A DNA stretch of 64,000 nt, from contig MU008186.1 in NCBI GenBank assembly GCA_010909165.1, positions 682,001-746,000 on the forward strand, given 5' to 3'. The translations under genes were made by a program, and so were the position numbers. Position 1 is the first letter of the stretch. Each line of letters starts with the position of its first letter. Positions 11,201 through 64,000 of the stretch are shown piece after piece. This DNA comes from Anthoceros angustus. Lineage: Eukaryota; Plantae; Anthocerotophyta. The notes beneath the pieces were generated by a model. That model did no database searches and was not told the origin of the DNA. It worked only from the letters and a program-made list of their open reading frames with translations.

Positions 11201-11205
11201 AAACA

Positions 11206-11218: not shown

Positions 11219-11220
11219 TA

Positions 11221-17004: not shown

Positions 17005-17154
17005 ATGTAGGATCCCAGAATCGAATCGGTTTTAGGTAGACGAGTAGTTGGGGCAACCTTCTTGGCCATTCCCCACACTGTGAAAAGGGAATTGCCTCAA
17101 GCAAGACAATAATCTTTGCGCTCAAGTATCATTGACCGTGGAATTTGTGTTGTG

Positions 17155-19800: not shown

Positions 19801-19809
19801 GTGAGACTC

Positions 19810-22136: not shown

Positions 22137-22139
22137 CTC

Positions 22140-38332: not shown

Positions 38333-39541
38333 ATGGCTTTAAATATTTCCAACACAACAGGAATCGATTATCGTGATCGATTCAATGGAACCAAGTATAA
38401 CATTTGGACAATCAGGATGAAGTCTATGCTAGAATTCAAAGAGGTTTGGCAATACGTGGATGGTTCCTTACCTCGTCCCACAATAGCTGCAGCCTCTACG
38501 GCCACAACCAGCGCGGGAACAGTAACCCAAGCTGATGTTGATCTCTGGAACCGTGGAGATAAAACTGCGAAGCATCTGATCATCAATGCCTTAGATGAAA
38601 GCATGATGGATCATGCTTCAGGATATGACACATCTAAAGAAATTTGGGATGGTCTGGCTAATCTCTACCAAGTTCAGAATATCATGACTCTTGTAGAGGC
38701 AAGGATGAATTTTCAGTCCTTGCGTTTGAAAGAGAAGGAGAGTGTTTCGGTTTACCTAGGAAAATTCAGGTATCTCCGCTCGCAGCTCTCACTCCTCGGC
38801 TCTAAGATGACAGAGCTGGATGCCGTTGCACAATTACTGGCCAGTCTTCCACCAAGTTGGGAGAGTTTTGCCTCACAGCAAAACGGGCCCTTACAAACTG
38901 CTTCAGCAGCTGTTGCAGCGGGTGGATCTTCAACTCTTACTGTTGCTGGTCTATCAGCCTTAATGCTACAAGAGGAGATAAGGAGAAGACTAAGCGCCGC
39001 CTCATCTTCAACTGTTAATTCAGACAAGGTGCTGATGGCTGAAAGGAAGCCTAAATGGAATAAGAAAGGAGGGCAGGGAAAGCCTACCAGCAGTACCTAC
39101 AATAAAGGTGATAAAAAGAAGAAGAAAGGAGCATGCAATTGGTGTCTAATTGAAGGGCATTGGGAGGATGACTGCCGTAAGAAAAAGGCAGGCGAACCAC
39201 GCAAGAACAAGCCTCATGAGACACATATTGCTCAATCAACAAGCAGGACTGTACCTTCAATTATGATAGTATGCTTCCTTTCTACTTGTACACCATCCTC
39301 TTCGTGGTACATGGACTCCAGAGCATCTGCTCACATATGCAACAATATGAGTTGCTTCACAACATTTGCTGCTGATTCCACAGGGCAAGTTGTTATAGTA
39401 GCTGATGACAGATCAGTTGCTGTGAAGGGCAAAGGGACAGTGATCTTACACACCTCTGTAGGAACAGATTTACACCTACAGGATGTTCTCCATGTACGCA
39501 AGGGCTGCAAGTTATTCCAGGGTGACACAATTGATCAATGA
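38333..39541 (+). CDS. gag: Copia gag, zinc knuckle and protease (402-aa ORF)
   Basis: DRFNGTKYNIW; LLASLPPSW; GACNWCLIEGHWEDDC; WYMDSRASAHIC. Confidence 0.85.
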   Translation: MALNISNTTGIDYRDRFNGTKYNIWTIRMKSMLEFKEVWQYVDGSLPRPTIAAASTATTSAGTVTQADVDLWNRGDKTAKHLIINALDESMMDHASGYDTSKEIWDGLANLYQVQNIMTLVEARMNFQSLRLKEKESVSVYLGKFRYLRSQLSLLGSKMTELDAVAQLLASLPPSWESFASQQNGPLQTASAAVAAGGSSTLTVAGLSALMLQEEIRRRLSAASSSTVNSDKVLMAERKPKWNKKGGQGKPTSSTYNKGDKKKKKGACNWCLIEGHWEDDCRKKKAGEPRKNKPHETHIAQSTSRTVPSIMIVCFLSTCTPSSSWYMDSRASAHICNNMSCFTTFAADSTGQVVIVADDRSVAVKGKGTVILHTSVGTDLHLQDVLHVRKGCKLFQGDTIDQ

Positions 39542-39568
39542 ATCGCTGAAGGAATAGAGCAGGACGAC

Positions 39569-40652
39569 TTGTATGTACTACAACTCTTACCTGCAGGTTC
39601 TTCAACCACCCCATTGAGCGAGAGTAATATTGCTTGTGTGGCAGACTCTATTTCTTCGAGAACTCTCTTATGGCACATGCGGTTTGGCCACATGAATCTC
39701 CCAAAACTTATGCGTCACACACAAGCTGATTATTTTAGAACAGGTCAAGGTCTTCCCAAATTAGGAAAACAAATGCAAGTCTGTGAGTCTTGTGTAATGG
39801 GTAAGCACAAGCAACTACCCTTCACCAACACTAACCTTGTAAGAGCAACCAGCCTGTTAGAATTGTTGCACGCAGATATATGTGGACCTTTAAGTGAACT
39901 CTCACTAGGAGGAGCAGAGTATTACTTGGTTATCGTTGATGATTACAACAGGTTTACTCATACCTATCCACTGAAGAGGAAAAGTGAAGCATTCACCATC
40001 TTCCAGGACTTCAAAACAATGGCTGAATCACAAACAGGATCCAAAGTTCGCTGCTTACGAACAGACAATGGCGGCGAGTTTAGCTCAAATGCATTTAAGG
40101 ACTGGTGTAAGGCTCATGGCATCATGCGTCAATACACACTACCTTATACATCCCAACAGAATGGGATAGCTGAGAAGAAGGTTGGGGACATTGCTAGCGC
40201 AGCAAGGACGATGCTTTATGCCTCCAATCTTCGCAAGCCCTATTGGGCCGAGGCTATGGTAACAGCGACTTACGTAATGAACAGGATGTACATCAGCCAT
40301 ACCGTTAGGGACAACACCATATGAATTGTGGTATAAGAGAAAACCAGCAGTAGCTCACCTTAGAATTTTCGTTTGCATAGTTTGGGCACTTGTTCCCCTT
40401 CAGGGCAGGCCTAAGTTAGGAGAAAGGGCAACCAGGCACATCTTTGTCGGTTATGGAGATCATGTGAAAGCCTATAAACTGTATTCTCCGTCTACTCGTC
40501 AACTTACACATGCTAGGAGAGTTGTCTTCAACGAAGCTCCTACCATAAGGAGTGCAGTGGGAGTTTCCACTGCAATTGGAGAATCGAGCCAGCAACCATC
40601 AAGGGAATTTATTCCTACAGAACCAGATTGGTTCATGAAGGAGAAAGTTTAG
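39569..40652 (+). pseudogene. pol: Copia integrase (in-frame stop at ~40322)
   Basis: LWHMRFGHMN; HADICGP; LRTDNGGEF; QQNGIAE; YWAEA; IFVGYG. Confidence 0.88.
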
Positions 40653-43600: not shown

Positions 43601-44172
43601 GATTCTCAGGGTCTCTCGATCTGTCAGTCGGGTGCCGTAGTTGCTACTTTGTTCTGACAATAGCAAAAGACGAAATCGCACTTGCAGCATTTGCTCAGGG
43701 TAACCTAAAACCGGAGCCGGTTTCTGCTAGACAGGCTAGTTGCCACAACACACAAACCGGATAAACCAGATGACAAAGACGAGCTATTAAACCTACTCAG
43801 CAATCGAATGACACGACCGATGTCTGACTCCCATTGTGAATCCCAATTGCAAACGTTTCGCATTCAATCTCAGAGCGACAGTTGCAAGCGGCATCTTTTG
43901 ACACGCAAATAAAGGAGACGCTCCAAACCTTATCTGCATAGCATCTGGGAACATGGAAGGAAGGACGACTTGTGCAGCATTGCGCTAGGCACAGTGCTTA
44001 CCGATTTGAGCCAAGTCTTGGAAAGGAATCACGAGGTCCAAATCATCTCCGGTGCAATTTCGATAACAGAGCTTATGGAATGCACCAGCTACTCCGCAGC
44101 ACATTCAAGTTCAGAACGGTAGAGCCTTGGATTGCACAATTGTTGCGCTCGAAAACAAGCAGCTGTTGGATC

Positions 44173-45708
44173 ATGGACTGGGTTAATGCAATCCTGTTTG
44201 CGGTAGCGGGATTGTTGGCCATTGTCCATATTGCGACTCAAGCAGATAAGTGGTCCAGCAGCGGAAGAAAGTTTCGCCTTCCCCCAGGCCCGCCGGCATG
44301 GCCAGTGGTGGGAAACCTCTCCATTTTCTCCGATCCCAGTCCCCACGCCCGCCTGGAGGAGCTGGCCAACAAGTTCGGACCTGTCATGTCCATCCGCCTG
44401 GGCTCAAACCTGGCTGTGGTTGTCTCATCCGCGGACATGGCTAGAGAGGTGATGAAAGTGCAGGACAACAATTTCGCATCCCGTCCCCGCACCAGCCTTC
44501 CATCACCTGGTTTTCCAGGAAGGAACGTGCGGATTTCAACCCCTCGGACCCAGGCACCAGTACGTGAGGTAATACTGATTGATGGTCTTTGCAAGATTAG
44601 AAATTTTGCAACCTTAACCTTGCTCTGGTGCTCACATGATGGACATGGTTCAATTTTCAGGAAGATCATGGTGACAGAGCTGTTGACTCCCAAGCGAACT
44701 CAGCGATTCGAGGAATCCAGACGGCAAGAACTGGATGCTGCCATGAGATCTGTATTGCACAAGAGTGGGCAAGAGGTCGACATCCATGGCCTGGGAATCA
44801 CTCTGACAATGAACAACATGACGCGGATGTTGATGAGCAAGCGCTTCTGCGAATTCGAGCCTGGAGAGCAGATTGGAGAAGAATCTTCCCTGGTTAGCTT
44901 CAGAGCTTCTTCTGTCGTCCTTGAACGACATCTTGGACAGATGTGAATCCATATGCTCCAGCCTGGAGCATTTCAAGAGCTAGCGTGCATAAAACGTCCT
45001 GACATGTGGCATCTATGGTGTGCAGGTAGATCCACAGGAAGCAGCCGAGTACGGCTGGTTGATCTGTGAGATCAACCGGTTGCTGGGAATCCCTGTGCTC
45101 GGGGACAGCATTCCTTTCCTGGGATTTCTGGACATGTTCACTGTAAGGAGCATGCAGAACTCTAGGAGCAGGCTGAACAACTTTCTGTCCAAGATCATCG
45201 ATAACCAGGCAGCGAATGAGCCAATCCTGTACCTCCTAACCACATGACTTCCTTGAGGTATTGCTGAACCTCCCGGGGGAGAAAGGAGTCGACAGAGATC
45301 AGGCCACCAAAGGAATTTTGACGGTAGGACAAACCGAAAGCTTGATCATCCGACCATGATGGTGTTTTGTGCACGCCACATATACTGTATATGCTCACTC
45401 TCAGATTGTGTGTCGTCCTGAGCTGCGATCGCAGGATATGTTGCTTGCTGGAGTCGACTCCTCTGCCGTGGTAACAGAATGGGCTTTGTCAGAACTGTTC
45501 AGGAACCCGTGCGTGCTAAAGAAGGCACAGCAAGAGGTGGACTGGGTTGTAGGGAAGGATCGTCAATTGCAGGAATCAGATCTGGCTAATCTTCCCTACG
45601 TTCAAGCTGCTGTGAAGGAGACGCTGCGACTGCATCCCGTCTCTCTCTTACTTATCCCACATTACTCCATGCAAGACAGCACACTTGGGGGCTACGATGC
45701 CCGCCAAA
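44173..45708 (+). pseudogene. 3'-truncated CYP71-clan P450 (CYP-4); stops in exon 4 after [11 protein letters not shown](V)PAK
   Basis: MDWVNAILFAVAGLLAIV..LPPGP..FASRP; introns at the same three positions as CYP-1 to CYP-3; DMLLAGVDSS I-helix. PERF and heme motifs are missing because the AAA block starts at 45709. Confidence 0.88.
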
Positions 45709-47667
45709 TCAGGTATAATCTTCCGTCTGATTTAAGCGGTCATCTTCGCTCAGCTGCATTTCGATGACTTGGTTAACATGGTTGATGCCCCAGCCTTTGC
45801 CTCCCCAAATCTTGGCAACGTTGATGATGTTGCGAATCTCCCGGCCGTGGAACGGATGGCTTGTAAGCTTCAAGAAGTCGATGTTGCCGTCCTGCAACCC
45901 TACCTTGTTCAACATTTGCCTCCAGATCTCAGCACGCTGTTGTTGATCTAGGGGAGGGTAGTATATGGACAGGGAGATGCGGGAGCGGAAGGCAGCGTCG
46001 AAGCACTTGGCTCTGTTGGTGGTGAGGAACATGATGCCTGAGTAGTACTCGAGCTGGCGGAGGAAGATGCCGGTGGAAGCATTTGTGTGCGGAGAAGAGG
46101 CGGACGATCTCTTTTCCATGTAGACATCGGCTTCGTCCAAGAGGAGGATTGCTTGCCAGGTGTAGGACAACTCAAAGATTGTGAGAAGTCGTGCCTCCAT
46201 GGCGCTCGAGTCTGTGCTCGGCAGCTCGAAGGCGTTCACGGAGTAGAGCGGCCTTTGCAATCTCTCCGCAAGCGACTCTGCTGTTAGGGTTTTGCCTCCC
46301 CCTGGAGGGCCATAGCACAAGATGATGCAACCGCTGCCCTTGTTGGCGATGTTGTCCACCTGCTGTACGCTCTGGTTGCTCGTGCAATTGGTGGCCATCT
46401 TGAGGAGCATGTCCTTCTTCCGTTGCTCCATCACCAGGTCGTTGAAGGGCTTGTGGGAGAAGACGATGTCGGAGAATCCGCACACATCAAAGCATCCCCA
46501 CAGCTTGCGGGAGAGGGAGAACCCGTAGACGAAGGCTGGGGACTTCTTGAGGTCCTCACTGTGGGGCCTTGGAACCTTGGGACATGTGGCGGCTCCTCGT
46601 AGCAGATCGCAGGGAGGCTCCGCGTTGCCCATGGGGTATCCAGGATTCATCCTGGCGAAGCTCTTGAGATCAACCATCACCCGGCCATCTCCCGGGTGTT
46701 TTTGTATCATCCAGCAGCTTCCTTTCCTCCTCGCGGTGGCTACTGAGCCCTTGTATTCCATGTAAGCTGGCTGGCCTGCTTCTTCCAACATAAGCTTGTA
46801 GAACATCAGTCCTTGGCTCAGAAATCTGTCTTCCCTCTGCTTCCTGTCGGTGTCGTGGAGATACTTCAAAGGAACAACTTCCAATGATGAGAACGGCTGC
46901 TTGTCGGTGTACTCCATAATACTGCTGGTCACCGTGCATTCCTTGTAGCTTTGCAGGTCGAAGTCCCTGACACCAATAGTGATCCGCCAGAACTTGGGGC
47001 TTTGGCCCCCGCCCTTCTGCTTCACCTTCAAGATGGTACCGGAAACAAGCTGAGTTGTTAGCTGGCACTTGTAAGATACCACCTCACCGGGCACAAGTAC
47101 AGTCCACAGGATGTCCCAGTCAATGCTCTTCTGCTCCAGTGCCTGCTGCTGTTTAAACAGAGTGTTCTTATACTCCTCTTTCACGAACCTAACAAGGTGA
47201 CGGAGATGGAGGTGGCGCTTCCCCGTTGCAGCTCTCAAGGACCGCTCCATTTCATCCCGAGCAAGAAAAAGAGTTCGGCCATTGATCTCCGGCTCGTCAT
47301 CAGTATCTGCTGCAGTGCCTGGAATGAGCGTGTTCACAATCTCGATTAGCCAGGAAGAGTACAGAGTGACACGGACGCGCATATCGCCGTCCCCATGATC
47401 TTCCTGAGTCACAATGAAGGGTGGTGTTCTCCCTGATTTCTCCTTGTGCTCCACAACCCGTTTCCGGACCTTTCTGCCGTTCCGCATCAGTGTCTCGTAG
47501 CGTGGCCATTTCCAGTCCGGCGCTTCCAGCTCCGACTCCTGGTCCGGATGCTCAGCGTCATTGGCACCCGCGTTCAGCTTCTCTAGGTCATCTGCGTAGT
47601 CGTCGTCGTCGTCGTCGTCGTGCATTCGCTGCACCATCTTGCTTACTTCGCGGACACATTGCGACAT
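45709..47667 (-). CDS. AAA+ ATPase of the family typical of filamentous fungi (DUF7025-like N-domain + AAA + lid), 652 aa, intronless, intact (AAA-L1)
   Basis: Walker A YGPPGGGKTLTAE, Walker B ILLLDEAD, sensor-1 FLTTNR, Arg finger AFRSRI; family-type motifs HLVRFVKEEY..DWDILWTVLVPG, GRVMVD, GFSL..K.W, KGSGCIIL, FLRQLEYY.GIMFLTTNR. Confidence 0.88.
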   Translation of the reverse strand: MSQCVREVSKMVQRMHDDDDDDDYADDLEKLNAGANDAEHPDQESELEAPDWKWPRYETLMRNGRKVRKRVVEHKEKSGRTPPFIVTQEDHGDGDMRVRVTLYSSWLIEIVNTLIPGTAADTDDEPEINGRTLFLARDEMERSLRAATGKRHLHLRHLVRFVKEEYKNTLFKQQQALEQKSIDWDILWTVLVPGEVVSYKCQLTTQLVSGTILKVKQKGGGQSPKFWRITIGVRDFDLQSYKECTVTSSIMEYTDKQPFSSLEVVPLKYLHDTDRKQREDRFLSQGLMFYKLMLEEAGQPAYMEYKGSVATARRKGSCWMIQKHPGDGRVMVDLKSFARMNPGYPMGNAEPPCDLLRGAATCPKVPRPHSEDLKKSPAFVYGFSLSRKLWGCFDVCGFSDIVFSHKPFNDLVMEQRKKDMLLKMATNCTSNQSVQQVDNIANKGSGCIILCYGPPGGGKTLTAESLAERLQRPLYSVNAFELPSTDSSAMEARLLTIFELSYTWQAILLLDEADVYMEKRSSASSPHTNASTGIFLRQLEYYSGIMFLTTNRAKCFDAAFRSRISLSIYYPPLDQQQRAEIWRQMLNKVGLQDGNIDFLKLTSHPFHGREIRNIINVAKIWGGKGWGINHVNQVIEMQLSEDDRLNQTEDYT

Positions 47668-49192
47668 CGCGTCTGCTGCTTGTGCGAGGGATGCTGCTCA
47701 AGCCACATGTACGACACCACAAGAGACACCTAGGTGAGATTACTTCAATTTGGTCACTACGGTTGTCACAGCACTCGTAGAAGACGTGGTGCAGTGCCCT
47801 GGATGTCAAGCAATACTAGTTGTCATCATCGGAACGTGTGAAATGTGCACCTTGAGCTTCGGTTTGTATGATATCTGGTGTTTCGGAGTTGATCCTTCTG
47901 TCCCTCTGAAATAAAGCAAACGCTTGCTCAAAAAACCATCTAGGTCGTAGCCAGCAGGGCACCAAAACCAGATACAAGAATGTTACCACCAACCTGGCTT
48001 CTTGAGCTACTTTCTCGGCCCCAAGAGATGTTCTTCAGTAGCTCAAAGGGGAGAAGGCCAAACTTGCGTATCGTGCCTGCAACCCGTATCAGTACTTGGC
48101 ACTGAATTTGTACTTTGAGACCTCCTTCTGTCACACATGAATTGTTTTTGACGAATCAATTGCAAGGTGAAAGCTGGAGATGGAGACATCTGTATTCATC
48201 ACCTGATTTAACCAACCTTGTGAGATGGCGTTGTCCAAGTTGAAAGAGCCCCCATGTTGTGAGCCACACGCTTGCCACCACCAGTGCTTGGAGAAGTCCC
48301 TTGAAAAACGTAAGCTGATACAGCAGGAGCACAATGGATCCAATAACAGCATCCGACAGTGATGGCCAGTCCAGAGGTGTAACGTTTTCTGTCACAATGT
48401 AGTAGACTTGTAAGCAAGTTTGAATTCCAAATTGTCACGCAACTAGTTGCAACTAAACCCTAAAGCCGCAAACCTACTTTGCTTCCATTTCAGAAGCATG
48501 GTCCTAGAAGTTGGCAAAACATTTTACCGATGTTCCTCAAAAGGATTGCTCGAGTCCGGAAAATTGTTGGTTCCTTCACTTCGCCAATAGGCACGGTTTT
48601 CGTAGCGTATATCCATATGTCGACTGCTGTATCCGCGAGGTCAGAGGGTAGCCTTGCCACTCCCCGCTCCACGCCTGGCACAATCTATAAATGCAGCCCA
48701 AACGCATGCTCATGATCTGGAAAGAGACTCTGTGGGCTTACAAAATACACAGTGGTCAACATTATTATGAATAATAACAGTAAAGGCACCTCATCCTCGT
48801 CCCATGTCACATCTAACGCATGCTTTCGTTCAGCTGTTGCCGCATATACACAGACTGGCCCCTCACCTTTGAGATGCAATCCATAAACACTTATCTTGTC
48901 TACAAGTGAAATGCAAACACGAGTTCGTTTACAGGGAAAAAGTTTCACATTCGGCCGCAAGTAAAAGCAATAAACACAGAAACAAGCGAAAACAGTTTTC
49001 AACGCTACGGCTTAACGAATATTACCAGAGGTAATACGAGTGCACATCACAAGAGTGGGAAGATCCTCCTCCATGAAACGCTCTAGTCGATTTGTACCTG
49101 GAAACTCATCATATTAGTTGAGCTCGCATTGCGGCATCTGTGATACGACCTACACGATAAACAATCTCGCCTTCTCTCTCCCATCCCATATA

Positions 49193-50113
49193 CTAAACGA
49201 AATTGAAGGTGTACGACGATTTCATACCTTGGTCCCAAACCCCCCAGTGCCCTAGCTGAATTGTGCAACTCTCAGACAAGTTGAAGGCAGCCAGCTTTTG
49301 AAGCAACCCGCGGAGTCCGTCAACCAATTGCCCTTCTTCAAACGAAATGCTGGTTTGGAAAATGTGGGATCCCGAAATTTCAATTGCCTGCTCGTTAGGC
49401 ATGGCGCTCCTCACACGTTGCAGCTCAGGTGTCGAGAGATCTTTATCAATTACCACAAGAATTTCGATGTCCGTGGTGCTCTTCTTTGACACACCATTTT
49501 CGGCCGCCCCCACTTCCGTACTCTCGCTATCGCAATCGAAAGGGAGATCGGCAGGAGTACGCTTCCCGATCCGACACTCATCCTCCAACTCCTCAGGCTT
49601 TGGACATGTTCGCTTTCGAAATCCATTCCCAACAGATCCACAGTGAAGAGCAGCTCCACTATCGGCCTCCGCCTTTGACTTCTTCACCTCCTCGTTGATC
49701 ACGTGCCGTTGAGGAAAACGATGGGCAACATCCCGTAGAAGTTCCCTATTGAGTTCCCCCTTCGCCCCTTTCGTTTCACCAAAAAGACGGACAATCTCCC
49801 GTAGAAGTTCCCTATTGAGTTCCCCCTCCGCCCCTTTCGTTTCACCAAAAAGACGGACAATCTCCCGTACAAGTTCCCTATTGAGTTCCCGTTCCTCCGC
49901 CCGTTTCGAGCAGCGGCGCCACGACCAAACAACCAGTGCTACCAAAGAAGACGATGCGAGGTTCAAAAGGATCTGGCCAATCCAATGGGCCGTTAAGAAG
50001 TTGTTCACCGCCTCATACAGTGGTTTCTTGTTCACTGCTGTCTCGGTCTCCATCGATGGACTCTCCTCGAGTACCCGTGACGTCTTTCCCATCGCCACAC
50101 CCACAGCTGCCAT
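49193..50113 (-). CDS. Orphan ORF, 306 aa, with one predicted TM segment and a 22-aa tandem repeat
   Basis: ATG start, uninterrupted. Hydrophobic ILLNLASSSLVALVVWSW followed by basic RR; the in-frame 66-bp repeat ELNRELxREIVRLFGETKGAxG occurs 2.4 times. Confidence 0.5.
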   Translation of the reverse strand: MAAVGVAMGKTSRVLEESPSMETETAVNKKPLYEAVNNFLTAHWIGQILLNLASSSLVALVVWSWRRCSKRAEERELNRELVREIVRLFGETKGAEGELNRELLREIVRLFGETKGAKGELNRELLRDVAHRFPQRHVINEEVKKSKAEADSGAALHCGSVGNGFRKRTCPKPEELEDECRIGKRTPADLPFDCDSESTEVGAAENGVSKKSTTDIEILVVIDKDLSTPELQRVRSAMPNEQAIEISGSHIFQTSISFEEGQLVDGLRGLLQKLAAFNLSESCTIQLGHWGVWDQGMKSSYTFNFV

Positions 50114-50956: not shown

Positions 50957-52636
50957 CTTGAATGACCCCGCGGATACCCGCGCCGAATCTGACAACGTTG
51001 TCACTAGGCCCACCACTGTAAACTACAACGCGCATCAACGGGCATGGAGATATCTTGTGTAGAAGATACAAGATCTTGTGTACAAGATCTTGCGTAGAAG
51101 ATACAAGATCTTGTACACAAGATTGTTTATCGTGTAGGTCGTATCACAGATGCCGCAATGCGAGCTCAACTAATATGATGAGTTTCCAGGTACAAATCGA
51201 CTAGAGCGTTTCATGGAGGAGGATCTTCCCACTCTTGTGATGTGCACTCGTATTACCTCTGGTAATATTCGTTAAGCCGTAGCGTTGAAAACTGTTTTCG
51301 CTTGTTTCTGTGTTTATTGCTTTTACTTGCGGCCGAATGTGAAACTTTTTCCCTGTAAACGAACTCGTGTTTGCATTTCACTTGTAGACAAGATAAGTGT
51401 TTATGGATTGCATCTCAAAGTTGAGGGGCCAGTCCGTATATATGCGGCAACAGCTGAACGAAAGCATGCGTTAGATGTGACATGGGACGAGGATGAGGTG
51501 CCTTTAGTGTTATTATTCATAATAATGTTGACCACTGTGTATTTTGTAAGCCCACAGAGTCTCTTTCCAGATCATGAGCATGCGTTTGGGCTGCATTTAT
51601 AGATTGTGCCAGGCGTGGAGCGGGAGTGGCAAGGCTACCCTCTGACCTCGCGGATACAGCAGTCGACATATGGATATACGCTACGAAAACCGTGCCTATT
51701 GGCGAAGTGAGGGAACCAACAATTTTCCGGACTCCGGCAATCCTTTTGAGGAACATCGGTAAAATGTTTTGCCAACTTCTAGGACCATGCTTCTGAAATG
51801 GAAGCAAAGTAGGTTTGCGGCTTTAGGGTTTAGTTGCAACTAGTTGCGTGACAATTTGGAGTACTTGATCCCTCGGATGAAATTCAAACTTGCTTACAAG
51901 TCTACTACATTGTGACAGAAAACGTTACACCTCTGGACTGGCCATCACTGTCGGATGCTGTTATTGGATCCATTGTGCTCCTGCTGTATCAGCTTACGTT
52001 TTTCAAGGGACTGCTCCAAGCACTGGTGGTGGCAAGCGTGTGGCTCACAACATGGGGGCTCTTTCAACTTGGACAACGCCATCTCACAAGGTTGGTTAAA
52101 TCAGGTGATGAATACAGATGTCTCCATCTCCAGCTTTCACCTTGCAATTGATTCGTCAAAAACAATTCATGTGTGACAGAAGGAGGTCTCAAAGTACAAA
52201 TTCGCCGTGCCAAGTACTGATACGGGTTGCAGGCACGATACGCAAGTTTGGCCTTCTCCTTTGAGCTACTGAAGAACATCTCTTGGGGCCGAGAAAGTAG
52301 CTCAAGAAGCCAGGTTGGTGGTAACATTCTTGTATCTGGTTTTGGTGCCCTGCTGGCTACGATCTAGATGGTTTTTTGAGCAAGCGTTTGCTTTATTTCA
52401 GAGGGACAGAAGGATCAACTCCGAAACATCAGATATCATACAAACCGAAGCTCAAGGTGCACATTTCACACGTTCCGATGATGACAACTAGTATTGCTTG
52501 ACATCCAGGGCACTGCACCACGTCTTCTACGAGTGCTGTGACAACCGTAGTGACCAAATTGAAGTAATCTCACCTAGGTGTCTCTTGTGGTGTCGTACAT
52601 GTGGCGAGCAGCATCCTTGCACAAGCAGCAGACGCG

Positions 52637-54365
52637 ATGTCGCAATGTGTCCGCGAAGTAAGCAAGATGGTGCAGCGAATGCACAACGACGACGACTACG
52701 CAGATGACCAAGAGAAGCTGAACGCGGGTGCCAATGACGCTGAGCAGCCGGACCAGGAGTCGGCGCTGGAAGCGCCGGACTGGAAATGGCCACGCTACGA
52801 GACACTGGTGCGGAACGGCAGAAAGGTCCGGAAACGGGTTGTGGAGCACAAGGAGAAATCAGGGAGAACACCACCCTTCATTGTGACTCAGGAAGATCAT
52901 GGGGACGGCGATATGCGCGTCCTTGTCACTCTGTACTCTTCCTGGCTAATCGAGATTGTGAAGACGCTCATTCCAAGCACTCTTTTTCTTGCTCGGGATG
53001 AAATGGAGCGGTGCTTGAGAGCTGCAACGGGGAAGCGCCACCTCCATCTCCGTCACCTTGTTAGGTGCGTGAAAGAGGAGTATAAGAACACTCTGTTTAA
53101 ACATCAGCAGGCACTGGAGCAGAAGAGCATTGACTGGGACATGCTGTGGACTGTACTTGTGCCCGGTGAGGTGGCATCTTACAAGTGTTACCTAACAACT
53201 CAGCTTGTTTCCGGTACCATCTTGCGGGTGAAGCAGAAGGGCGGGGACCAAGGCTCCAAGCTCTGGAAGATCACTATTGGTGTCAGGGACTATGACCTGC
53301 AAAGCTACAAGGAATGCACGGTGATCAGAAGTATTATGGAGTACACCGACAAGCAGCCGTTCTCATCATTGGAAGTTGTTCCTTTGAAGTACCTCCACGA
53401 CACCGACAGGAAGCAGAGGGAAGACAGATTTCTGAGGCAAGGACAGATGTTCTACAAGCTTATGTTGGAAGAAGCAGGCCAGCCAGTCTACATGGAATAC
53501 AAGGGCTCAGTAGCCACCGCGAGGAGGGAAGGAGACCGCTGGATCATACAAAAACACCTGGGAGATGGCCGGGTGATGGTTGATCTCAAGAGCTTCGCCA
53601 GGATGAATCCTGGATACCCCATGGGCAACGCGGAGCCTCCCAGCGATCTGCTACGAGGAACCGCCACATGTGCCAAGGTTCCAAGGCCCCACAGTGAGCA
53701 CCTCAAGAAGTCCCCAGCCTTCGTCTACGGGTTCTCCCTCTCCCGCAAGCTGTGGGGATGCTTTGATGTGTGCGGATTCTCCGACATCGTCTTCTCCAAC
53801 AAGCCCTTCAACGACCTGGTGATGGAGAAACGGAAGAAGGACATGCTCCACATGATGGCCACTAATTGCACGAGCAACCAGAGAGTACAGCAGGTGGACA
53901 ACATCGCCAACAAGGGCAGCGGTTGCATCATCTTGTGCTATGGCCCTCCAGGGGAGGCAAAACCCTAACAGCAGAGTCGCTTGCGGAGGTATTGCACAGG
54001 CCGCTCTACTCCGTGAACGCCTTCGAGCTGCCGAGCACAGACTCGAGCGCCATGGAGGCACAACTAACTCACAATCTTTGAGTTGTCCTACACCTGGCGA
54101 GCAATCCTCCTCTTGGACGAAGCCGGTGTCTACATGGAAAAGAGATCGCCCACCTCTTCTCCGCACACAAATGCTTCCACCGGCATCTTCCTCCGCCACC
54201 TCGAGTACTACGAAGGCATCATGTTCCTCACCACCAACAGAGCCAAGTGCTTCGACGCTGCCTTCCGCTCCCGCATCTCCCTGTCCATATACTACCCTCC
54301 CTAGATCAACAACAGCGTGCTGAGATCTGGAGGCAAATGTTGAACAAGGTAGGGTTGCAGGACGG
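52637..54365 (+). pseudogene. AAA+ ATPase paralog AAA-R1, 3'-truncated by the tandem junction
   Basis: Same motifs as AAA-L1; a G-run frameshift in Walker A (~53950), a shift at ~54065, a 14-aa in-frame deletion, and loss of the last ~59 codons. Confidence 0.85.
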
Positions 54366-54514
54366 ATCGTCAATTGCAGGAATCAGATCTGGCTAATCTT
54401 CCCTACGTTCAAGCTGCTGTGAAGGAGACGCTGCGACTGCATCCCGTCTCTCTCTTACTTATCCCACATTACTCCATGCAAGACAGCACACTTGGGGCTA
54501 CGATGCCCGCCAAA

Positions 54515-57046
54515 TCAGGTATAATCTTCCGTCTGATTTAAGCGGTCATCTTCGCTCAGCTGCATTTCGATGACTTGGTTAACATGGTTGATGCCCCAGC
54601 CTTTGCCTCCCAAATCTTGGCAACGTTGATGATGTTGCGAATCTCCCGGCCGTGGAACGGATGGCATAAGCTTCAAGAAGTCGATGTTGCCGTCCTGCAA
54701 CCCTACCTTGTTCAACATTTGCCTCCAGATCTCAGCACGCTGTTGTTGATCTAGGGAGGGTAGTATATGGACAGGGAGATGCGGGAGCGGAAGGCAGCGT
54801 CGAAGCACTTGGCTCTGTTGGTGGTGAGGAACATGATGCCTGAGTAGTACTCGAGCTGGCGGAGGAAGATGCCGGTGGAAGCATTTGTGTGCGGAGAAGA
54901 GGCGGACGATCTCTTTCCATGTAGACATCGGCTTCGTCCAAGAGGAGGATTGCTTGCCAGGTGTAGGACAACTCAAAGATTGTGAGAAGTCGTGCCTCCA
55001 TGGCGCTCGAGTCTGTGCTCGGCAGCTCGAAGGCGTTCACGGAGTAGAGCGGCCTTTGCAATCTCTCCGCAAGCGACTCTGCTGTTAGGGTTTTGCCTCC
55101 CCTGGAGGCCATAGCACAAGATGATGCAACCGCTGCCCTTGTTGGCGATGTTGTCCACCTGCTGTACGCTCTGGTTGCTCGTGCAATTGGTGGCCATCTT
55201 GAGGAGCATGTCCTTCTTCCGCCTGTGAACAGAGATGAGCCTTTATAGAGAGGGAACACAACACTCCCATACAATATGGGTTATATGCACTAGGCACACT
55301 AGATACTAGCACACAAGCACACAAGACACTTGCACACCACACCTTACAAGTAGGTGGGCTTGGCCTTATATAGTCCTAGCCTTGAATCCTATTGGTCACT
55401 TGACCTTGAATCCTATTGGTTACTTGACTTGCCCTTTACTTTTGGACTTTCTAGAAGATACTTTCTAGAAGATGCATGACTTTCAAGTTTGTTATTTTAG
55501 GGCACACTTCATAACCTGCTTTTAGGGCACTCTTCATAATATATTTTGATATGTTGTAATAAATCACTTCTAACACTCCCACTCAACTAACACTCCCACT
55601 CAACATATCAAAATTATTCCCTTAGGCCTAGCATCTTGCTAAACCTAGCAAGAAAATCAAGGCTTTGGTCAAAATATCTGCCGGCATGTCTCCTGTTGGA
55701 CAATACTCTAGCTTTACCTCTTTTGACTTTACCTTCTCTCTTATAAAGTGATGTTTCACTTCGATGTGCTTGGTTCTAACATGAAAAGTTGCATTCTTGG
55801 CTAAGAAGATGCAACCTTGATTGTCGTTGAAGGGCTTGTGGGAGAAGACGATGTCGGAGAATCCGCACACATCAAAGCATCCCCACAGCTTGCGGGAGAG
55901 GGAGAACCCGTAGACGAAGGCTGGGGACTTCTTGAGGTCCTCACTGTGGGGCCTTGGAACCTTGGGACATGTGGCGGCTCCTCGTAGCAGATCGCAGGGA
56001 GGCTCCGCGTTGCCCATGGGGTATCCAGGATTCATCCTGGCGAAGCTCTTGAGATCAACCATCACCCGGCCATCTCCCGGGTGTTTTTGTATCATCCAGC
56101 AGCTTCCTTTCCTCCTCGCGGTGGCTACTGAGCCCTTGTATTCCATGTAAGCTGGCTGGCCTGCTTCTTCCAACATAAGCTTGTAGAACATCAGTCCTTG
56201 GCTCAGAAATCTGTCTTCCCTCTGCTTCCTGTCGGTGTCGTGGAGATACTTCAAAGGAACAACTTCCAATGATGAGAACGGCTGCTTGTCGGTGTACTCC
56301 ATAATACTGCTGGTCACCGTGCATTCCTTGTAGCTTTGCAGGTCGAAGTCCCTGACACCAATAGTGATCCGCCAGAACTTGGGGCTTGGCCCCGCCCTTC
56401 TGCTTCACCTTCAAGATGGTACCGGAAACAAGCTGAGTTGTTAGCTGGCACTTGTAAGATACCACCTCACCGGGCACAAGTACAGTCCACAGGATGTCCC
56501 AGTCAATGCTCTTCTGCTCCAGTGCCTGCTGCTGTTTAAACAGAGTGTTCTTATACTCCTCTTCACGAACCTAACAAGGTGACGGAGATGGAGGTGGCGC
56601 TTCCCGTTGCAGCTCTCAAGGACCGCTCCATTTCATCCCGAGCAAGAAAAGAGTTCAGCCATTGATCTCCGGCTCGTCATCAGTATCTGCTGCAGTGCCT
56701 GGAATGAGCGTGTTCACAATCTCGATTAGCCAGGAAGAGTACAGAGTGACACGGACGCGCATATCGCCGTCCCCATGATCTTCCTGAGTCACAATGAAGG
56801 GTGGTGTTCTCCTGATTTTCTCCTTGTGCTCCACAACCCGTTTCCGGACCTTTCTGCCGTTCCGCATCAGTGTCTCGTAGCGTGGCCATTTCCAGTCCGG
56901 CGCTTCCAGCTCCGACTCCTGGTCCGGATGCTCAGCGTCATTGGCACCCGCGTTCAGCTTCTCTAGGTCATCTGCGTAGTCGTCGTCGTCGTCGTCGTCG
57001 TGCATTCGCTGCACCATCTTGCCACTTCGCGGACACATTGCGACAT
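54515..57046 (-). pseudogene. AAA-L2, interrupted by a Copia 3' fragment
   Basis: Carries the AAA-L1-specific residues (RKGSCWMIQKHP, 7x Asp); insertion at 55222-55822; several frameshifts. Confidence 0.85.
55222..55822 (-). mobile_element. Copia 3' fragment: RNase H C-terminus, duplicated PPT, partial LTR (55575-55222)
   Basis: DNQGCI..FHVRTKHIEVKHHFIRE..DILTKAL; ttgagtgggag-TGTTAG twice; no TSD. Confidence 0.88.
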
Positions 57047-58552
57047 CGCGTCTGCTGCTTGTGCGAGGGATGCTGCTCAAGCCACATGTACGACACCACA
57101 AGAGACACCTAGGTGAGATTACTTCAATTTGGTCACTACGGTTGTCACAGCACTCGTAGAAGACGTGGTGCAGTGCCCTGGATGTCAAGCAATACTAGTT
57201 GTCATCATCGGAACGTGTGAAATGTGCACCTTGAGCTTCGGTTTGTATGATATCTGGTGTTTCGGAGTTGATCCTTCTGTCCCTCTGAAATAAAGCAAAC
57301 GCTTGCTCAAAACCATCTAGGTCATGTGGCAGGGCACCAAAACCAGATACAAGAATGTTACCACCAACCTGGCTTCTTGAGCTACTTTCTCGGCCCCAAG
57401 AGATGTTCTTCAGTAGCTCAAAGGGAGAAGGCCAAACTTGCGTATCGTGCCTGCAACCCGTATCAGTACTTGGCACGGCGAATTTGTACTTTGAGACCTC
57501 CTTCTGTCACACATGAATTGTTTTTGACGAATCAATTGCAAGGTGAAAGCTGGAGATGGAGACATCTGTATTCATCACCTGATTTAACCAACCTTGTGAG
57601 ATGGCGTTGTCCAAGTTGAAAGAGCCCCATGTTGTGAGCCACACGCTTGCCACCACCAGTGCTTGGAAGTCCCTTGAAAACGTAAGCTGATACAGCAGGA
57701 GCACAATGGATCCAATAACAGCATCCGACAGTGATGGCCAGTCCAGAGGTGTAACGTTTTCTGTCACAATGTAGTAGACTTGTAAGCAAGTTTGAATTCC
57801 AAAATTGTCACGCAACTAGTTGCAACTAAACCCTAAAGCCGCAAACCTACTTTGCTTCCATTTCAGAAGCATGGTCCTAGAAGTTGGCAAAACATTTTAC
57901 CGATGTTCCTCAAAAGTTGCTCGAGTCCGGAAAATTGTTGGTTCCTTCACTTCGCCAATAGGCACGGTTTTCGTAGCGTATATCCATATGTCGACTGCTG
58001 TATCCGCGAGGTCAGAGGTAGCCTTGCCACTCCCGCTCCACGCCTGGCACAATCTATAAATGCAGCCCAAACGCATGCTCATGATCTGGAAAGAGACTCT
58101 GTGGGCTTACAAAATACACAGTGGTCAACATTATTATGAATAATAACAGTAAAGGCACCTCATCCTCGTCCCATGTCACATCTAACACTTTCGTTCAGCT
58201 GTTGCCGCATATACACAGACTGGCCCCTCACCTTTGAGATGCAATCCATAAACACTTATCTTGTCTACAAGTGAAATGCAAACACGAGTTCGTTTACAGG
58301 GAAAAAGTTTCACATTCGGCCGCAAGTAAAAGCAATAAACACAGAAACAAGCGAAAACAGTTTTCAACGCTACGGCAACGAATATTACCAGAGGTAATAC
58401 GAGTGCACATCACAAGGTGGGAAGATCCTCCTCCATGAAACGCTCTAGTCGATTTGTACCTGGAAACTCATCATATTAGTTGAGCTCGCATTGCGGCATC
58501 TGTGATACGACCTACACGATAAACAATCTCGCCTTCTCTCCCATCCCATATA

Positions 58553-60319
58553 CTAAACGAAATTGAAGGTGTACGACGATTTCATACCTTGGTCCCAAAC
58601 CCCAGTGCCCTAGCTGAATTGTGCAACTCTCAGACAAGTTGAAGGCAGCCAGCTTTTGAATTGAGAAGAGATGTATTCTCCTCCATTGTCACTCCTAAGT
58701 GTCTTGAGGCATTCTCCACTTTCGTTCTCCACCAAGGCTTTCCACTCCTTGAATGTCTTGAACACTTGGACTTCTCCTTCAAAAGGTATGTCCAACTCCT
58801 CCTTGTGAAGTCATCCACAAACACTAGAATGTAGCGGGCTCCTCCATGGGTAGGGTTCTTCATTGGTCCACACACAGGTGTGTACAAGTTCAACGCCTTT
58901 GCTGCTCGGCGCTCAATCCTTGGGAACTTGGTTGGTGAAGCTTTCCCATCATGCACCCTTGGCACAACTCTCACCAATATCAATCCACCATTTGTTGATT
59001 CTTCATCATCTTGATGTTGTCCACTCCAGTGTGCCCCAAGCGTTGATGCCACAAATCTATTGAGTGCTCTTAGTGAGCTTGACACAAATGTGCAAGCTTG
59101 TTGATCACCTGGAAGCACACAACTTGAGATTGCCTTCCGAACACCTCGAGCTATCACCTTGACATTAGGTGATTACGGTTGCTCGGGTTGGATCGACATC
59201 CTCGAGTTGAACACAATCTCATTCCAGTCGTGATTCTTGCTCGAAAGAAGATTCTTCGCAAGACCAGCACATGGTGTACATCCTTGATTGTACCTTTGGA
59301 TGGTCCTCCGAGTTGAACTTTAATCACACCTCTTCCTTTGATCTCGTGTGACCTATTGTCTCCAAGCGCCACTTTATGCCCTTGACATTTCTTCATAGCT
59401 TGAGAACCAAGGCCGGTTGTAGGTGAAGTGTTGAGATGCTCAGTCGGTACAAACTCTCATCCTTCTTTGATGGGAGGCACGTACTCTTTTCTGTTGAGGC
59501 ATGAAAAGATGTTCTTCCTTCCTCACTTGATTGGCTTGTGACTCCTTTCCCTTCTTCAAACGAAATGCTGGTTGGAAAATGTGGGATCCGAAATTTCAAT
59601 TGCCTGCTCGTTAGGCATGGCGCTCCTCACACGTTGCAGCTCAGGTGTCGAGAGATCTTTATCAATTACCACAAGAATTTCGATGTCCGTGGTGCTCTTC
59701 TTTGACACACCATTTTCAGCCGCCCCACTTCCGTACTCTCGCTATCCGCAATCGAAAGGGAGATCGGCAGGAGTACGCTTCCCGATCCGACACTCATCCT
59801 CCAACTCCTCAGGCTTTGGACATGTTCGCTTTCGAAATCCATTCCCAACAGATCCACAGTGAAGAGCAGCTCCACTATCGGCCTCCGCCTTTGACTTCTT
59901 CACCTCCTCGTTGATCACGTGCCGTTGAGGAAAACGATGGGCAACATCCGTAGAAGTTCCTATTGAGTTCCCCCCTTCGCCCCTTTCGTTTCACCAAAAG
60001 ACGGACAATCTCCCGTAGAAGTTCCTATTGAGTTCCCCTCCGCCCCTTTCGTTTCACCAAAAGACGGACAATCTCCCGTACAAGTTCCCTATTGAGTTCC
60101 CGTTCCTCCGCCCGTTTCGAGCAGCGGCGCCGACCAAACAACCAGTGCTACCAAAGAAGACGATGCGAGGTTCAAAAGGATCTGGCCAATCCAATGGGCC
60201 GTTAAAGTTGTTCACCGCCTCATACAGTGGTTTCTTGTTCACTGCTGTCTCGGTCTCCATCGATGGACTCTCCTCGAGTACCCGTGACGTCTTCCCATCG
60301 CCACACCCACAGCTGCCAT
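58553..60319 (-). pseudogene. Disrupted second copy of the 306-aa orphan ORF
   Basis: Colinear with 49193-50113; frameshifts plus an 888-bp Copia insertion. Confidence 0.7.
58661..59548 (-). mobile_element. Internal Copia fragment (protease to integrase core), degenerate
   Basis: D*ASQHFT..WFSSYEE..LGDNRSHEIKGRG; YILVFVDDFTRRSW; CLKTLRSDNGGEY; no LTR and no TSD. Confidence 0.85.
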
Positions 60320-62899
60320 CTATCCAGGGTGCCTGCACCCTCTCCTGTTGCAATGTCTTGGGCCCTCGCAGGTTTCAACTTCAGCCGATTCAAGATGGCA
60401 CGTGTTGTCAACCAGAAGTGCGCACACAGGCTGGAGTGTAACACCCTTCTTGACGGTGAAGCTACGCTATGGGGGCATTTTCCTCGACTTTTCTTCTTCA
60501 TTGACGCCGCCCACATTGCGAAAAACTAATTCAATAATCGGTTGTGTCAGAGACTTCTACCTTGAATGGGCTAGGCCTAAATATCGGTTCGCCAGGGTAC
60601 GGCCTGGCGAACCATTTCCATGCCATGAGCATGGCCTTCCTCTCCTGCCCCTCTCTCGTATCCGTTGCAGCGCGACCGGGCCACGGGGCGAGGGAACTAA
60701 TTCAAGTTCCCGTCGTCCTGAATACCGCGGCGATATTCTGGCACGATACAAAGTCGAACTCATTGGCACGCACAGTCATTGAAAGAAAATTTCCCTCCAC
60801 CAGGACTCTGAACTGCAAAAGGACAATGCGCTGCAACATCATCTATCCGCTCCCTCACTGGAGCACGTGCATCCTCCCCAGCCTTCGGTCTTTCAACTCT
60901 TACCGCGTGCCCTGCTTTGAGCAGAGCGCTCTCTCCGCTCTCGTTCTCAACTGAAACGAACGAAGGGCGAGCAGTATCGCCGCGGGAATTGCCACGACAA
61001 TCAGGGCGACGGGAACTTGAATTAGTTTCCCGTCGCTCCCGGTGGCTCGGTCGCGGGTTGGCACGGATAAGAGAGAGAGGAGTAGGGGAGAGGAAGGCCA
61101 TGCTCATGGCATGGCATGTCGGTTCGCCAGGCCGTACCCTGGCGAACCGATATTTAGGCGTTTCGACTTGAATGACCCCCGCGGATACCCGCGCCGAATC
61201 TGACAACGTTGTCACTAGGCCCACCACTGTAAACTACAACGCGCATCAACGGGCATGGAGATATCTTGTGTAGAAGATACAAGATCTTGTGTACAAGATC
61301 TTGCGTAGAAGATACAAGATCTTGTACACAAGATTGTTTATCGTGTAGGTCGTATCACAGATGCCGCAATGCGAGCTCAACTAATATGATGAGTTTCCAG
61401 GTACAAATCGACTAGAGCGTTTCATGGAGGAGGATCTTCCCACTCTTGTGATGTGCACTCGTATTACCTCTGGTAATATTCGTTAAGCCGTAGCGTTGAA
61501 AACTGTTTTCGCTTGTTTCTGTGTTTATTGCTTTTACTTGCGGCCGAATGTGAAACTTTTTCCCTGTAAACGAACTCGTGTTTGCATTTCACTTGTAGAC
61601 AAGATAAGTGTTTATGGATTGCATCTCAAAGTTGAGGGCCAGTCCGTATATATGCAGCAACAGCTGAACGAAAGCATGCGTTAGATGTGACATGGGACGA
61701 GGATGAGGTGCCTTTAGTGTTATTATTCATAATAATGTTGACCACTGTGTATTTTGTAAGCCCACAGAGTCTCTTTCCAGATCATGAGCATGCGTTTGGG
61801 CTGCATTTATAGATTGTGCCAGGCGTGGAGCGGGGAGTGGCAAGGCTACCCTCTGACCTCGCGGATACAGCAGTCGACATATGGATATACGCTACGAAAA
61901 CCGTGCCTATTGGCGAAGTGAGGGAACCAACAATTTTCCGGACTCCGGCAATCCTTTTGAGGAACATCGGTAAAATGTTTTGCCAACTTCTAGGACCATG
62001 CTTCTGAAATGGAAGCAAAGTAGGTTTGCGGCTTTAGGCACCTTGGGCGGGGTTTTGTTAGGATATGGTGGTGGAGGCCTTTAGGGTTTAGTTGCAACTA
62101 GTTGCGTGACAATTTAGATGATCCCTCGGATGAAATTCAAACTTGCTTACAAGTCTACTACATTGTGACAGAAAACGTTACACCTCTGGACTGGCCATCA
62201 CTGTCGGATGCTGTTATTGGATCCATTGTGCTCCTGCTGTATCAGCACTGTATCAGCTTACGTTTTCAAGGGACTGCTCCAAGCACTGGTGGTGGCAAGC
62301 GTGTGGCTCACAACATGGGGCTCTTTCAACTTGGACAACGCCATCTCACAAGGTTGGTTAAATCAGGTGATGAATACAGATGTCTCCATCTCCAGCTTTC
62401 ACCTTGCAATTGATTCGTCAAAAACAATTCATGTGTGACAGAAGGAGGTCTCAAAGTACAAATTCATACGTGCCAAGTACTGATACGGGTTGCAGGCACG
62501 ATACGCAAGTTTGGCCTTCTCCTTTGAGCTACTGAAGAACATCTCTTGGGGCCGAGAAAGTAGCTCAAGAAGCCAGGTTGGTGGTAACATTCTTGTATCT
62601 GGTTTTGGTGCCCTGCTGCTACGATCTAGATGGTTTTGAGCAAGCGTTTGCTTTATTTCAGAGGGACAGAAGGATCAACTCCGAAACATCAGATATCATA
62701 CAAACCGAAGCTCAAGGTGCACATTTCACACGTTCCGATGATGACAACTAGTATTGCTTGACATCCAGGGCACTGCACCACGTCTTCTACGAGTGCTGTG
62801 ACAACCGTAGTGACCAAATTGAAGTAATCTCACCTAGGTGTCTCTTGTGGTGTCGTACATGTGGCTTGAGCAGCATCCCTTGCACAAGCAGCAGACGCG

Positions 62900-64000
62900 A
62901 TGTCGCAATGTGTCCGCGAAGTAAGCAAGATGGTGCAGCGAATGCACAACGACGACGACTACGCAGATGACCAAGAGAAGCTGAACGCGGGTGCCAATGA
63001 CGCTGAGCAGCCGGACCAGGAGTCGGCGCTGGAAGCGCCGGACTGGAAATGGCCACGCTACGAGACACTGGTGCGGAACGGCAGAAAGGTCCGGAAACGG
63101 GTTGTGGAGCACAAGGAGAAATCAGGAGAACACCACCCTTCATTGTGACTCAGGAAGATCATGGGGACGGCGATATGCGCGTCCTTGTCACTCTGTACTC
63201 TTCCTGGCTAATCGAGATTGTGAAGACGCTCATTCCAAGCACTCTTTTTCTTGCTCGGATGAAATGGAGCGGTGCTTGAGAGCTGCAACGGGAAGCGCCA
63301 CCTCCATCTCCGTCACCTTGTTAGGTGCGTGAAAGAGGAGTATAAGAACACTCTGTTTAAACATCAGCAGGCACTGGAGCAGAAGAGCATTGACTGGGAC
63401 ATGCTGTGGACTGTACTTGTGCCCGGTGAGGTGGCATCTTACAAGTGTTACCTAACAACTCAGCTTGTTTCCGGTACCATCTTGCGGGTGAAGCAGAAGG
63501 GCGGGGACCAAGGCTCCAAGCTCTGGAAGATCACTATTGGTGTCAGGGACTATGACCTGCAAAGCTACAAGGAATGCACGGTGATCAGAAGTATTATGGA
63601 GTACACCGACAAGCAGCCGTTCTCATCATTGGAAGTTGTTCCTTTGAAGTACCTCCACGACACCGACAGGAAGCAGAGGAAGACAGATTTCTGAGGCAAG
63701 GACAGATGTTCTACAAGCTTATGTTGGAAGAAGCAGGCCAGCCAGTCTACATGGAATACAAGGGCTCAGTAGCCACCGCGAGGAGAAGGAGACCGCTGGA
63801 TCATCTAAAAACACCTGGGAGATGGCCGGGTGATGGTTGATCTCAAGAGCTTCGCCAGGATGAATCCTGGATACCCATGGGCAACGCGGAGCCTCCCAGC
63901 GATCTGCTACGAGGAACCGCCACATGTGCCAAGGTTCCAAGGCCCCACAGTGAGCACCTCAAGAAGTCCCCAGCCTTCGTCTACGGGTTCTCCCTCTCCC
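62900..64000 (+). pseudogene. AAA-R2 (partial, frameshifted in this consensus, runs off the window)
   Basis: Carries the AAA-R1-specific features (HNDDDY, 14-aa deletion, QGQMFY). Confidence 0.85.

Follow-up and report, generated by a model that had tools for sequence, protein, structure and literature searches.

The 64,000-nucleotide stretch of Anthoceros angustus contig MU008186.1 analyzed here (the window, to which all positions refer) carries an intact, uninterrupted open reading frame (ORF) of 652 codons at 45709-47667 on the minus strand. It forms the large last exon of a hornwort nuclear gene that has eight exons and is expressed. The encoded protein is approximately 1190 residues long and consists of a plant-type N-terminal extension, an N-region of approximately 390 residues that contains DUF7025, and a single AAA+ ATPase domain of the classical clade. 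The gene is one of four copies (copy 1) found in the window by tblastn and self-blastn, and it abuts a cytochrome P450 exon.

The gene structure was established with contigs of public run X1, which behaves as RNA, placed on positions 43900-49400. These contigs contain eight GT..AG joints, seven of which are on the minus strand. One contig of 3086 nt matches 45130-47693 with 0 differences and then skips 47694-47850, 47906-47993, 48128-48216, and 48389-48527. Further RNA contigs skip 48685-48789, 48900-49025, and 49098-49227, and the joints could be chained up to 49225. There are thus seven RNA-supported introns upstream of the ORF, all short, canonical, and of the GT-AG type. An initial annotation, made from the letters alone, had described the gene as lacking introns. 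That is true only of its DUF7025-AAA core, since the ORF is the last exon after these seven introns.

As assembled, the frame that begins with the ATG at 50113 (a 306-residue ORF at 49193-50113) runs for 493 codons without a stop, crossing five junctions and reaching exon 6, and the ATPase frame has no stop between the start of exon 4 and its own end. Compared with assembled copy 1, the RNA contig carries 2 additional nt after 48103, in exon 6, and the assembly itself has the two letters at this site in copies 2 and 3. With the 2 nt added, the eight exons from 50113 to 45709 form a single ORF of 1190 codons with its stop at 45709. We read the 652-codon ORF as the last exon of an eight-exon gene because of the RNA joints together with this open frame, and the coding start is very probably 50113 rather than 47667. 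The gene model is corrected accordingly, from 652 to approximately 1190 residues.

Judged by its Pfam matches, the ORF belongs to the DUF7025-AAA family (PF22942 plus PF00004). DUF7025 (PF22942) spans residues 174-270 of the 652-residue ORF with 53.4 bits (cutoff 27), and AAA (PF00004) lies C-terminal to it at residues 449-570 with 62.6 bits (cutoff 21.2), both above the gathering score. The signatures of the classical AAA+ clade are present (Walker A GxxGxGKT, Walker B hhhhDE, the sensor-1 Asn, and the arginines of the second region of homology (SRH)), and copy 1 keeps every column that is invariant in an alignment of 45 family sequences. The closest sequences to its AAA domain are the D2 domains of CDC48/p97/NSF (E ~5e-16). 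The initial annotation had quoted a series of motif strings, judged the catalytic motifs intact, and assigned the gene to the fungal DUF7025-associated AAA group rather than CDC48, FtsH, BCS1, or katanin. Every one of those strings occurs in the translation, the catalytic residues are indeed all in place, and the family assignment was borne out by Pfam, by Atlas, and by the fold of the N-region.

The predicted structure of the ORF had a predicted local distance difference test score (pLDDT) of 86.7 and a predicted template-modelling score (pTM) of 0.83. Its AAA part resembles Rpt subunits, AFG3L2, Msp1/ATAD1, and FtsH (best Foldseek E ~1e-13, with Msp1/ATAD1 at ~1e-12). The N-region is rich in beta-barrels in the model. 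When the N-region was compared with solved structures, the best Z was ~5, a weak likeness to Tudor/SH3-like barrels that covers the DUF7025 part only, and Foldseek gave no match below E 0.006. AAA_lid_13 (PF23232) was not reported for the ORF at E <= 0.01. The model places a helical lid at residues 575-651, and only 13-67% of the members of the nearest clusters carry PF23232. None of the 45 aligned family members has the pore-loop-1 aromatic (aromatic-hydrophobic-Gly) at the aligned position, which reads ELPSTDSSAMEA in copy 1 and S-x-EL-G-T-x-x-LE across the alignment. Matches to PADLOC defence systems were to generic AAA proteins only (IetA and TRIP13, E 1e-14 to 1e-8) and are not evidence of a defence system.

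The 538 residues that precede the core include a hydrophobic segment at residues 44-66 followed by RRCSKR, a second hydrophobic stretch at approximately residues 419-455, and, within the part encoded by exon 1, three NRELxREIVRLFGETKGA repeats. The two hydrophobic segments are probably membrane-spanning. Exon 1 had no match in Pfam, PADLOC, or Atlas. Long homologues of 1075-1311 residues occur in the ferns Adiantum and Pteridium, the liverworts Riccia, Calypogeia, and Marchantia paleacea, and the moss Ceratodon. Their N-terminal extensions are homologous to one another and share the hornwort layout, in which one hydrophobic segment lies close to the N-terminus and is followed by one to three others at approximately residues 300-480. 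A tblastn search with the N-termini of homologues found no match in the upstream exons of the window, blastp of the joined N-terminus against the proteins collected in the analysis gave no hit either, and only a profile comparison yielded matches. When single exons were compared with a profile built from the long plant extensions, columns 210-252 were matched by the end of exon 1 (E 6e-4), columns 286-293 by exon 3 (E 0.13), and columns 326-348 by exon 4 (E 6e-4). Because these weak matches are colinear, we take the hornwort extension to be weakly homologous to those of the other plants.

The extension is not fixed across plants. In a moss subclade (Ceratodon purpureus P0064 and its close relative P0077), a protein kinase domain replaces the hydrophobic extension in front of the DUF7025-AAA core. 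Another Ceratodon homologue, P0009, is a single-exon gene of 2412 nt for 803 residues and lacks the intron-bearing extension. The long Adiantum gene spans 22 kb.

Relatives were sought by word-index and by exhaustive HMMER searches. The former recover only a small part of the family (42-55 hits, whereas full HMMER gave 2174), and alone they cannot support an absence. Their best named matches, at ~35-43% identity, were confined to non-seed land plants and Glomeromycota; further matches were to Dikarya at ~26-31% identity, with Streptomyces-type proteins last. The exhaustive search returned 25199 hits, of which 2174 had E < 1e-30, and none exceeded 44% identity except for a transcript fragment from a second hornwort genus (Nothoceros aenigmaticus), which is 90% identical to residues 490-652. 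Names were recovered for 30 representatives, most hits carrying none. The named plants are ferns (two species of Adiantum, and Pteridium), liverworts (Riccia, Calypogeia, and Marchantia paleacea), and mosses (Ceratodon and five species of Sphagnum). A lycophyte, a clubmoss, has homologues too. Rhizophagus represents the Glomeromycota, and farther out are the Dikarya Atractiella, Erysiphe, and Vezdaea, the glaucophyte Cyanophora, and a metagenome-assembled genome (MAG) of Peribacteraceae. Neither seed plants nor green algae appeared among the named hits, whether in the three word searches or in the exhaustive search, and most hits in these searches are unnamed.

The DUF7025-AAA core comes from a family that is very large in fungi. 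Feature and shape searches of Atlas place the ORF with DUF7025-AAA clusters dominated by Ascomycota, and its entire N-region aligns with members of those clusters at template-modelling (TM) scores of 0.70-0.78 over 345-362 residues. One Atlas cluster of DUF7025-AAA proteins is labelled mostly Uroviricota (tailed phages). With that cluster, Cyanophora paradoxa (P0112), and the Peribacteraceae MAG (P0110, candidate-phyla bacteria), the range of the family is wider than the label "fungal" implies. Literature searches found no paper on this ATPase family or on DUF7025, PF22942, PF23232, or AAA_lid_13, although the tables of large catalogues of horizontal gene transfer may list it. The family goes unmentioned in the main text of the Anthoceros angustus genome paper and of papers on horizontal transfer in Rhizophagus, the fungal timetree, and the bryophyte pangenome.

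Three trees group the plant and Glomeromycota sequences. A quick tree of 64 rows had all plant rows and the Glomeromycota in a single clade (support 99). In a FastTree of 202 rows, all named plant rows fell in a clade of 68 (99) that was sister to 12 rows of a Glomeromycota clade (100); the joint node had support 100, among ~115 other rows. An IQ-TREE analysis of 51 rows under LG+C20 with posterior mean site frequencies (PMSF) recovered the plants (91/87), the Glomeromycota (100/100), and the two together (98/100), with Dikarya, a glaucophyte, and bacteria outside. In the approximately unbiased (AU) test, constraining the plants to group with Cyanophora cost 134 log-likelihood units (p = 6e-8), a comparison in which the group was picked after the tree had been seen. 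The plant clade contains three deep sub-clades. Since each of them mixes bryophytes with vascular plants, several paralogues were already present in early land plants. The sequence from the window groups with ferns (100/98).

Within Anthoceros the gene has been amplified locally. Copies 1 and 2 are arranged head-to-head as a fold-back with 3.3-kb inverted arms (45887-49167 against 54365-51120, 95% identical). The whole fold-back, together with 343 bp of P450 exon, was then duplicated in tandem to give copies 3 and 4, on the minus and plus strands respectively. The initial annotation's count of four copies stands for the window, but only copy 1 is complete. Copy 2 lacks exon 1, its arm ending at 51120, and the last ~59 codons, with homology stopping at codon 594. 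Copy 3 has insertions of ~600 bp in its ATPase exon (55222-55822) and of ~860 bp in exon 1 (58660-59546), and copy 4 lacks exon 1. Neither insertion is shared by another copy; the first is AT-rich, contains short tandem repeats, and lacks clear terminal inverted repeats. Frame breaks of 1-2 bp in copies 2-4 (52600-64000; deletions relative to copy 1) fall, with few exceptions, within homopolymer runs of G, A, T, or C. Because of this location they should not be read as decay. They look like homopolymer errors of long-read assembly, and the assembly seems to be unpolished here. Frame breaks in this genome call for caution, as assembly errors of this type would mislead annotation.

The large exons of copies 1 and 2 differ at 54 codons, 50 of them nonsynonymous and 4 synonymous, and the NG86 ratio of nonsynonymous to synonymous divergence (dN/dS) is 2.6. 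The binomial P is ~0.002 on the 4/54 codon count and 0.0005-0.011 on the NG86 path count. Divergence is concentrated in the exon: 62/1780 sites differ there, compared with 2/769 in introns (Fisher p = 5e-8). The small exons differ at 9/700 sites (p = 0.03 compared with introns), and at least 6 of these 9 differences are nonsynonymous. Random assembly error and neutral pseudogene decay are disfavoured as explanations because neither would favour exons and replacement sites. The pattern suggests diversifying selection between the paralogues.

These results are best explained by an ancient exchange of genes between early land plants and mycorrhizal fungi, with vertical inheritance thereafter, and we consider this probable. 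Horizontal transfer, as the initial annotation proposed, is thus the best reading of the trees for the origin of the core, but the transfer would be ancient and not into this genome. That annotation had expected a transferred gene to be joined to plant flanks and not to be vertically distributed among green plants. RNA does link the gene to its P450 flank, but homologues occur across hornworts, liverworts, mosses, a lycophyte, and ferns in one plant clade. The likelier direction is from fungus to plant, because most of the wider family is fungal and the fungal form is the short one with few introns. The core would then have entered the land-plant stem by one ancient transfer from a mycorrhizal-fungus lineage, been fused there to an intron-containing N-terminal extension, and been inherited vertically, with an early duplication among land plants and loss of the gene in seed plants. 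In Anthoceros it would recently have been copied into the head-to-head fold-back, with the tandem duplication following, and would have broken a P450 gene in the process.

The transfer could instead have run the other way, with a long-established gene, or its core, passing from an early land plant to the ancestor of arbuscular-mycorrhizal fungi. For other genes, movement from plants into Rhizophagus has been reported (PMC5982333), and the quick tree had the Glomeromycota within plant diversity, beside a group of lycophyte and moss sequences. We nevertheless regard this direction as unlikely, given how overwhelmingly fungal the wider family is (the nearest Atlas clusters are Ascomycota, 2174 clusters have E < 1e-30, and Dikarya lie outside the joint clade). 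In addition, the fungal members and one moss copy lack the intron-bearing extension, and a short fungal gene gaining plant exons fits this more easily. A family of old eukaryotic origin, inherited vertically with massive loss and hidden paralogy and without any horizontal transfer, would account for the patchy but wide occurrence in Cyanophora, bacteria, and phage-labelled clusters. It is improbable in view of the strong grouping of plants with Glomeromycota instead of Cyanophora, the AU result, and the lack of green algae and seed plants among the named hits.

The two remaining explanations concern this genome alone, and we reject both. A recent transfer from a fungus to this hornwort, as the initial annotation implied, has in its favour that the fungal-like core is a single exon and that the copies form a young, rearranged array beside retrotransposons. 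It is hardly credible for a gene that groups with ferns within the plant clade, carries a plant-type extension and seven introns that are spliced out, is no closer to its best fungal matches (~36-42% identity) than to ferns and mosses, and has a counterpart in Nothoceros. Similarly, we give almost no weight to an assembly chimera or endophyte contamination. The homopolymer errors point that way, as do several contigs of the DNA run X2 that depart from the window at 45699 and 45728. A check of the P450-ATPase junction had been suggested for this very reason, and the spliced X1 contig crosses from the ATPase into the P450 exon without a mismatch (45130-47693). This RNA comes from a different study than the X2 DNA, although from the same sample, and the transcript is spliced with GT-AG introns of plant size. 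DNA contigs of X2 cover every bin of 43900-49400, the flanks are a plant-type P450 and copia elements, and homologues are located on plant chromosomes of 17-181 Mb. For example, a Ceratodon homologue lies on a 17-Mb chromosome between RING/LON and PGG-domain genes.

Several observations weigh against parts of the account given above. The one-ORF gene model depends on a 2-nt difference between RNA and assembly, and contigs from near-identical paralogues can be chimeric. Each exon match to the N-extension profile is weak on its own. The lack of seed plants and green algae was seen among the hits that carry a name, which are a minority. Since plants and Glomeromycota are each monophyletic and stand as sisters, the direction of transfer cannot be read from nesting, and the earlier quick tree even placed the Glomeromycota inside the plants. 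The next sister group in the IQ-TREE analysis (Cyanophora, the Peribacteraceae bacterium, and unnamed rows) is weakly placed, at 70/26. As for selection, a dN/dS above 1 comes from one pair of copies, one member of which is truncated, and gene conversion of the upstream part could explain some of the contrast between introns and exons.

The features of the protein allow a tentative mechanism. The protein may form a ring on a membrane, recognise a partner through its beta-barrel N-region, and remodel or release that partner at the expense of ATP. It would more likely be a remodeller or switch than a processive unfoldase. Threading of the processive Msp1/CDC48 kind is disfavoured because the aromatic pore loop 1 is absent throughout the family. 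The excess of replacements between paralogues would point to a role in genetic conflict, such as defence or interaction with microbes. As a hypothesis, such a role also fits the tandem and inverted amplification and the swappable N-termini. The stress or defence module put forward in the initial annotation would gain some indirect support from the dN/dS above 1 and from the varied N-terminal fusions.

We also entertain a more far-reaching scenario, which we consider speculative and rather doubtful as a whole. In it, the core is a relic of the dawn of symbiosis, common only to arbuscular-mycorrhizal fungi and non-seed plants. It would have been fused to a membrane-spanning, sensor-like N-terminus (a kinase in one moss lineage), would now be under diversifying selection as an undescribed membrane-bound AAA+ module of immunity or symbiosis control, and would later have been lost in seed plants.

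The closest known relatives are the fungal DUF7025-AAA ATPases, which are uncharacterised and often carry PF23232. They share the domain order, the N-region fold, the AAA domain, and the invariant catalytic residues, and they likewise lack an aromatic pore loop 1. The plant protein differs in its added intron-containing extension of ~540 residues with hydrophobic segments, and PF23232 was not detected in hornwort copy 1; identity to Dikarya members is ~25-30%. The Glomeromycota members (e.g., the Rhizophagus irregularis cluster of P0070, with 19 member sequences), sister to the plants at 98/100, are 36-42% identical over nearly the full ORF and are short forms of ~700 residues without the plant extension. 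The membrane-anchored extractases Msp1/ATAD1 likewise combine an N-terminal anchor, which in the hornwort is a prediction, with one classical AAA domain. However, Msp1 threads its substrates by aromatic pore loops and has no DUF7025 N-region, whereas the hornwort family has neither the aromatic loop nor the simple layout of Msp1, and it is not a member of that group. In its distribution, the gene recalls other bryophyte genes whose origin has been placed in Mucoromycota or mycorrhiza-like fungi, such as the macro2-domain gene (PMC7181705), which shows the same pattern of early-diverging land plants plus a mycorrhizal fungal lineage. The protein family is different, and DUF7025-AAA genes occur in lycophytes and ferns as well and are multi-copy.

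The claim of a recent transfer is thus replaced by an older and better-supported account, in which the core has its sister group in mycorrhizal fungi, occurs in every lineage of non-seed land plants that was sampled, and forms part of a plant-specific protein with a predicted membrane anchor. This makes the gene a concrete candidate for gene exchange tied to the earliest associations between plants and fungi. The family could be studied in bryophytes that have homologues. Coordinates of the features of the window and of the catalytic motifs are collected in the table.

Table. Features of the ATPase array and the adjoining P450 gene (positions in the window), and catalytic motifs of copy 1 (residues of the 652-residue ORF).
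Feature	Position	Strand	Remarks
Exon 1, coding part	49228..50113	-	Contains the ATG, the hydrophobic anchor at aa 44-66, and the three repeats
Exon 2	49026..49097	-	RNA joints
Exon 3	48790..48899	-	RNA joints
Exon 4	48528..48684	-	Matches the conserved "ARLP..V.IYA.KTV" block of the plant N-extension profile
Exon 5	48217..48388	-	Second hydrophobic segment (model aa ~419-455)
Exon 6	47994..48127	-	Two extra RNA letters behind 48103 join the upstream and ATPase frames
Exon 7	47851..47905	-	GT-AG joints 47693/47851 and 47905/47994
Exon 8, coding part (copy 1)	45709..47693	-	Contains the 652-codon ORF, with the whole DUF7025 N-region and AAA; acceptor at 47693
Sequence 3' of stop	45130..45708	-	In the same RNA contig; 3' untranslated region or overlapping transcripts; antisense over P450 exon 45369-45767
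Copy 2	51120..54365	+	Inverted arm of copy 1, 95%; equivalents of exons 2-7; ATPase exon from 52637
Copy 3	54352..60331	-	Tandem duplicate of the copy-1 unit, 98.5%; begins with the duplicated 343-bp piece of P450 exon
Copy 4	61331..64000	+	Tandem duplicate of copy 2; ATPase exon from 62900; 3' end beyond the window
P450, 5' part, plant-type	44173..45728	+	RNA-supported intron 44892-45024; Pfam p450; PPGPPAWPVVGNL hinge
Walker A	GPPGGGKT 453-460		G453, G456, G458, K459, T460; invariant or nearly invariant columns
Walker B	LLLDEAD 508-514		D511, E512; invariant or nearly invariant columns
Sensor-1	TTNR, T549-R552		Invariant or nearly invariant columns
SRH, arginine finger	FRSRI 560-564		R563; invariant or nearly invariant columns

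Homology to P450 ends at ~45700-45728, at the ATPase stop codon, and no heme-binding exon follows downstream on the plus strand. For these two reasons we conclude that the ATPase array truncates the P450 gene. The RNA contig of the ATPase crosses the P450 exon in antisense at 45130-45767; either the two genes overlap tail to tail or the contig builder merged their transcripts. On the minus strand, heme-binding P450 exons (FGxGRRGCPG) occur at three separate places, 24730, 27739, and 31200, and the window has a P450 cluster besides the truncated copy.

Ty1/copia retrotransposon genes (gag, integrase, and RVT_2) are present at 17129-23041 and 38333-40324, on both sides of the P450/ATPase region. 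Over positions 1-16000, purines are in strong and continuous excess on the plus strand (GC skew ~+0.2, AT skew up to +0.34); this part has hardly any long ORFs and only one short tandem repeat.

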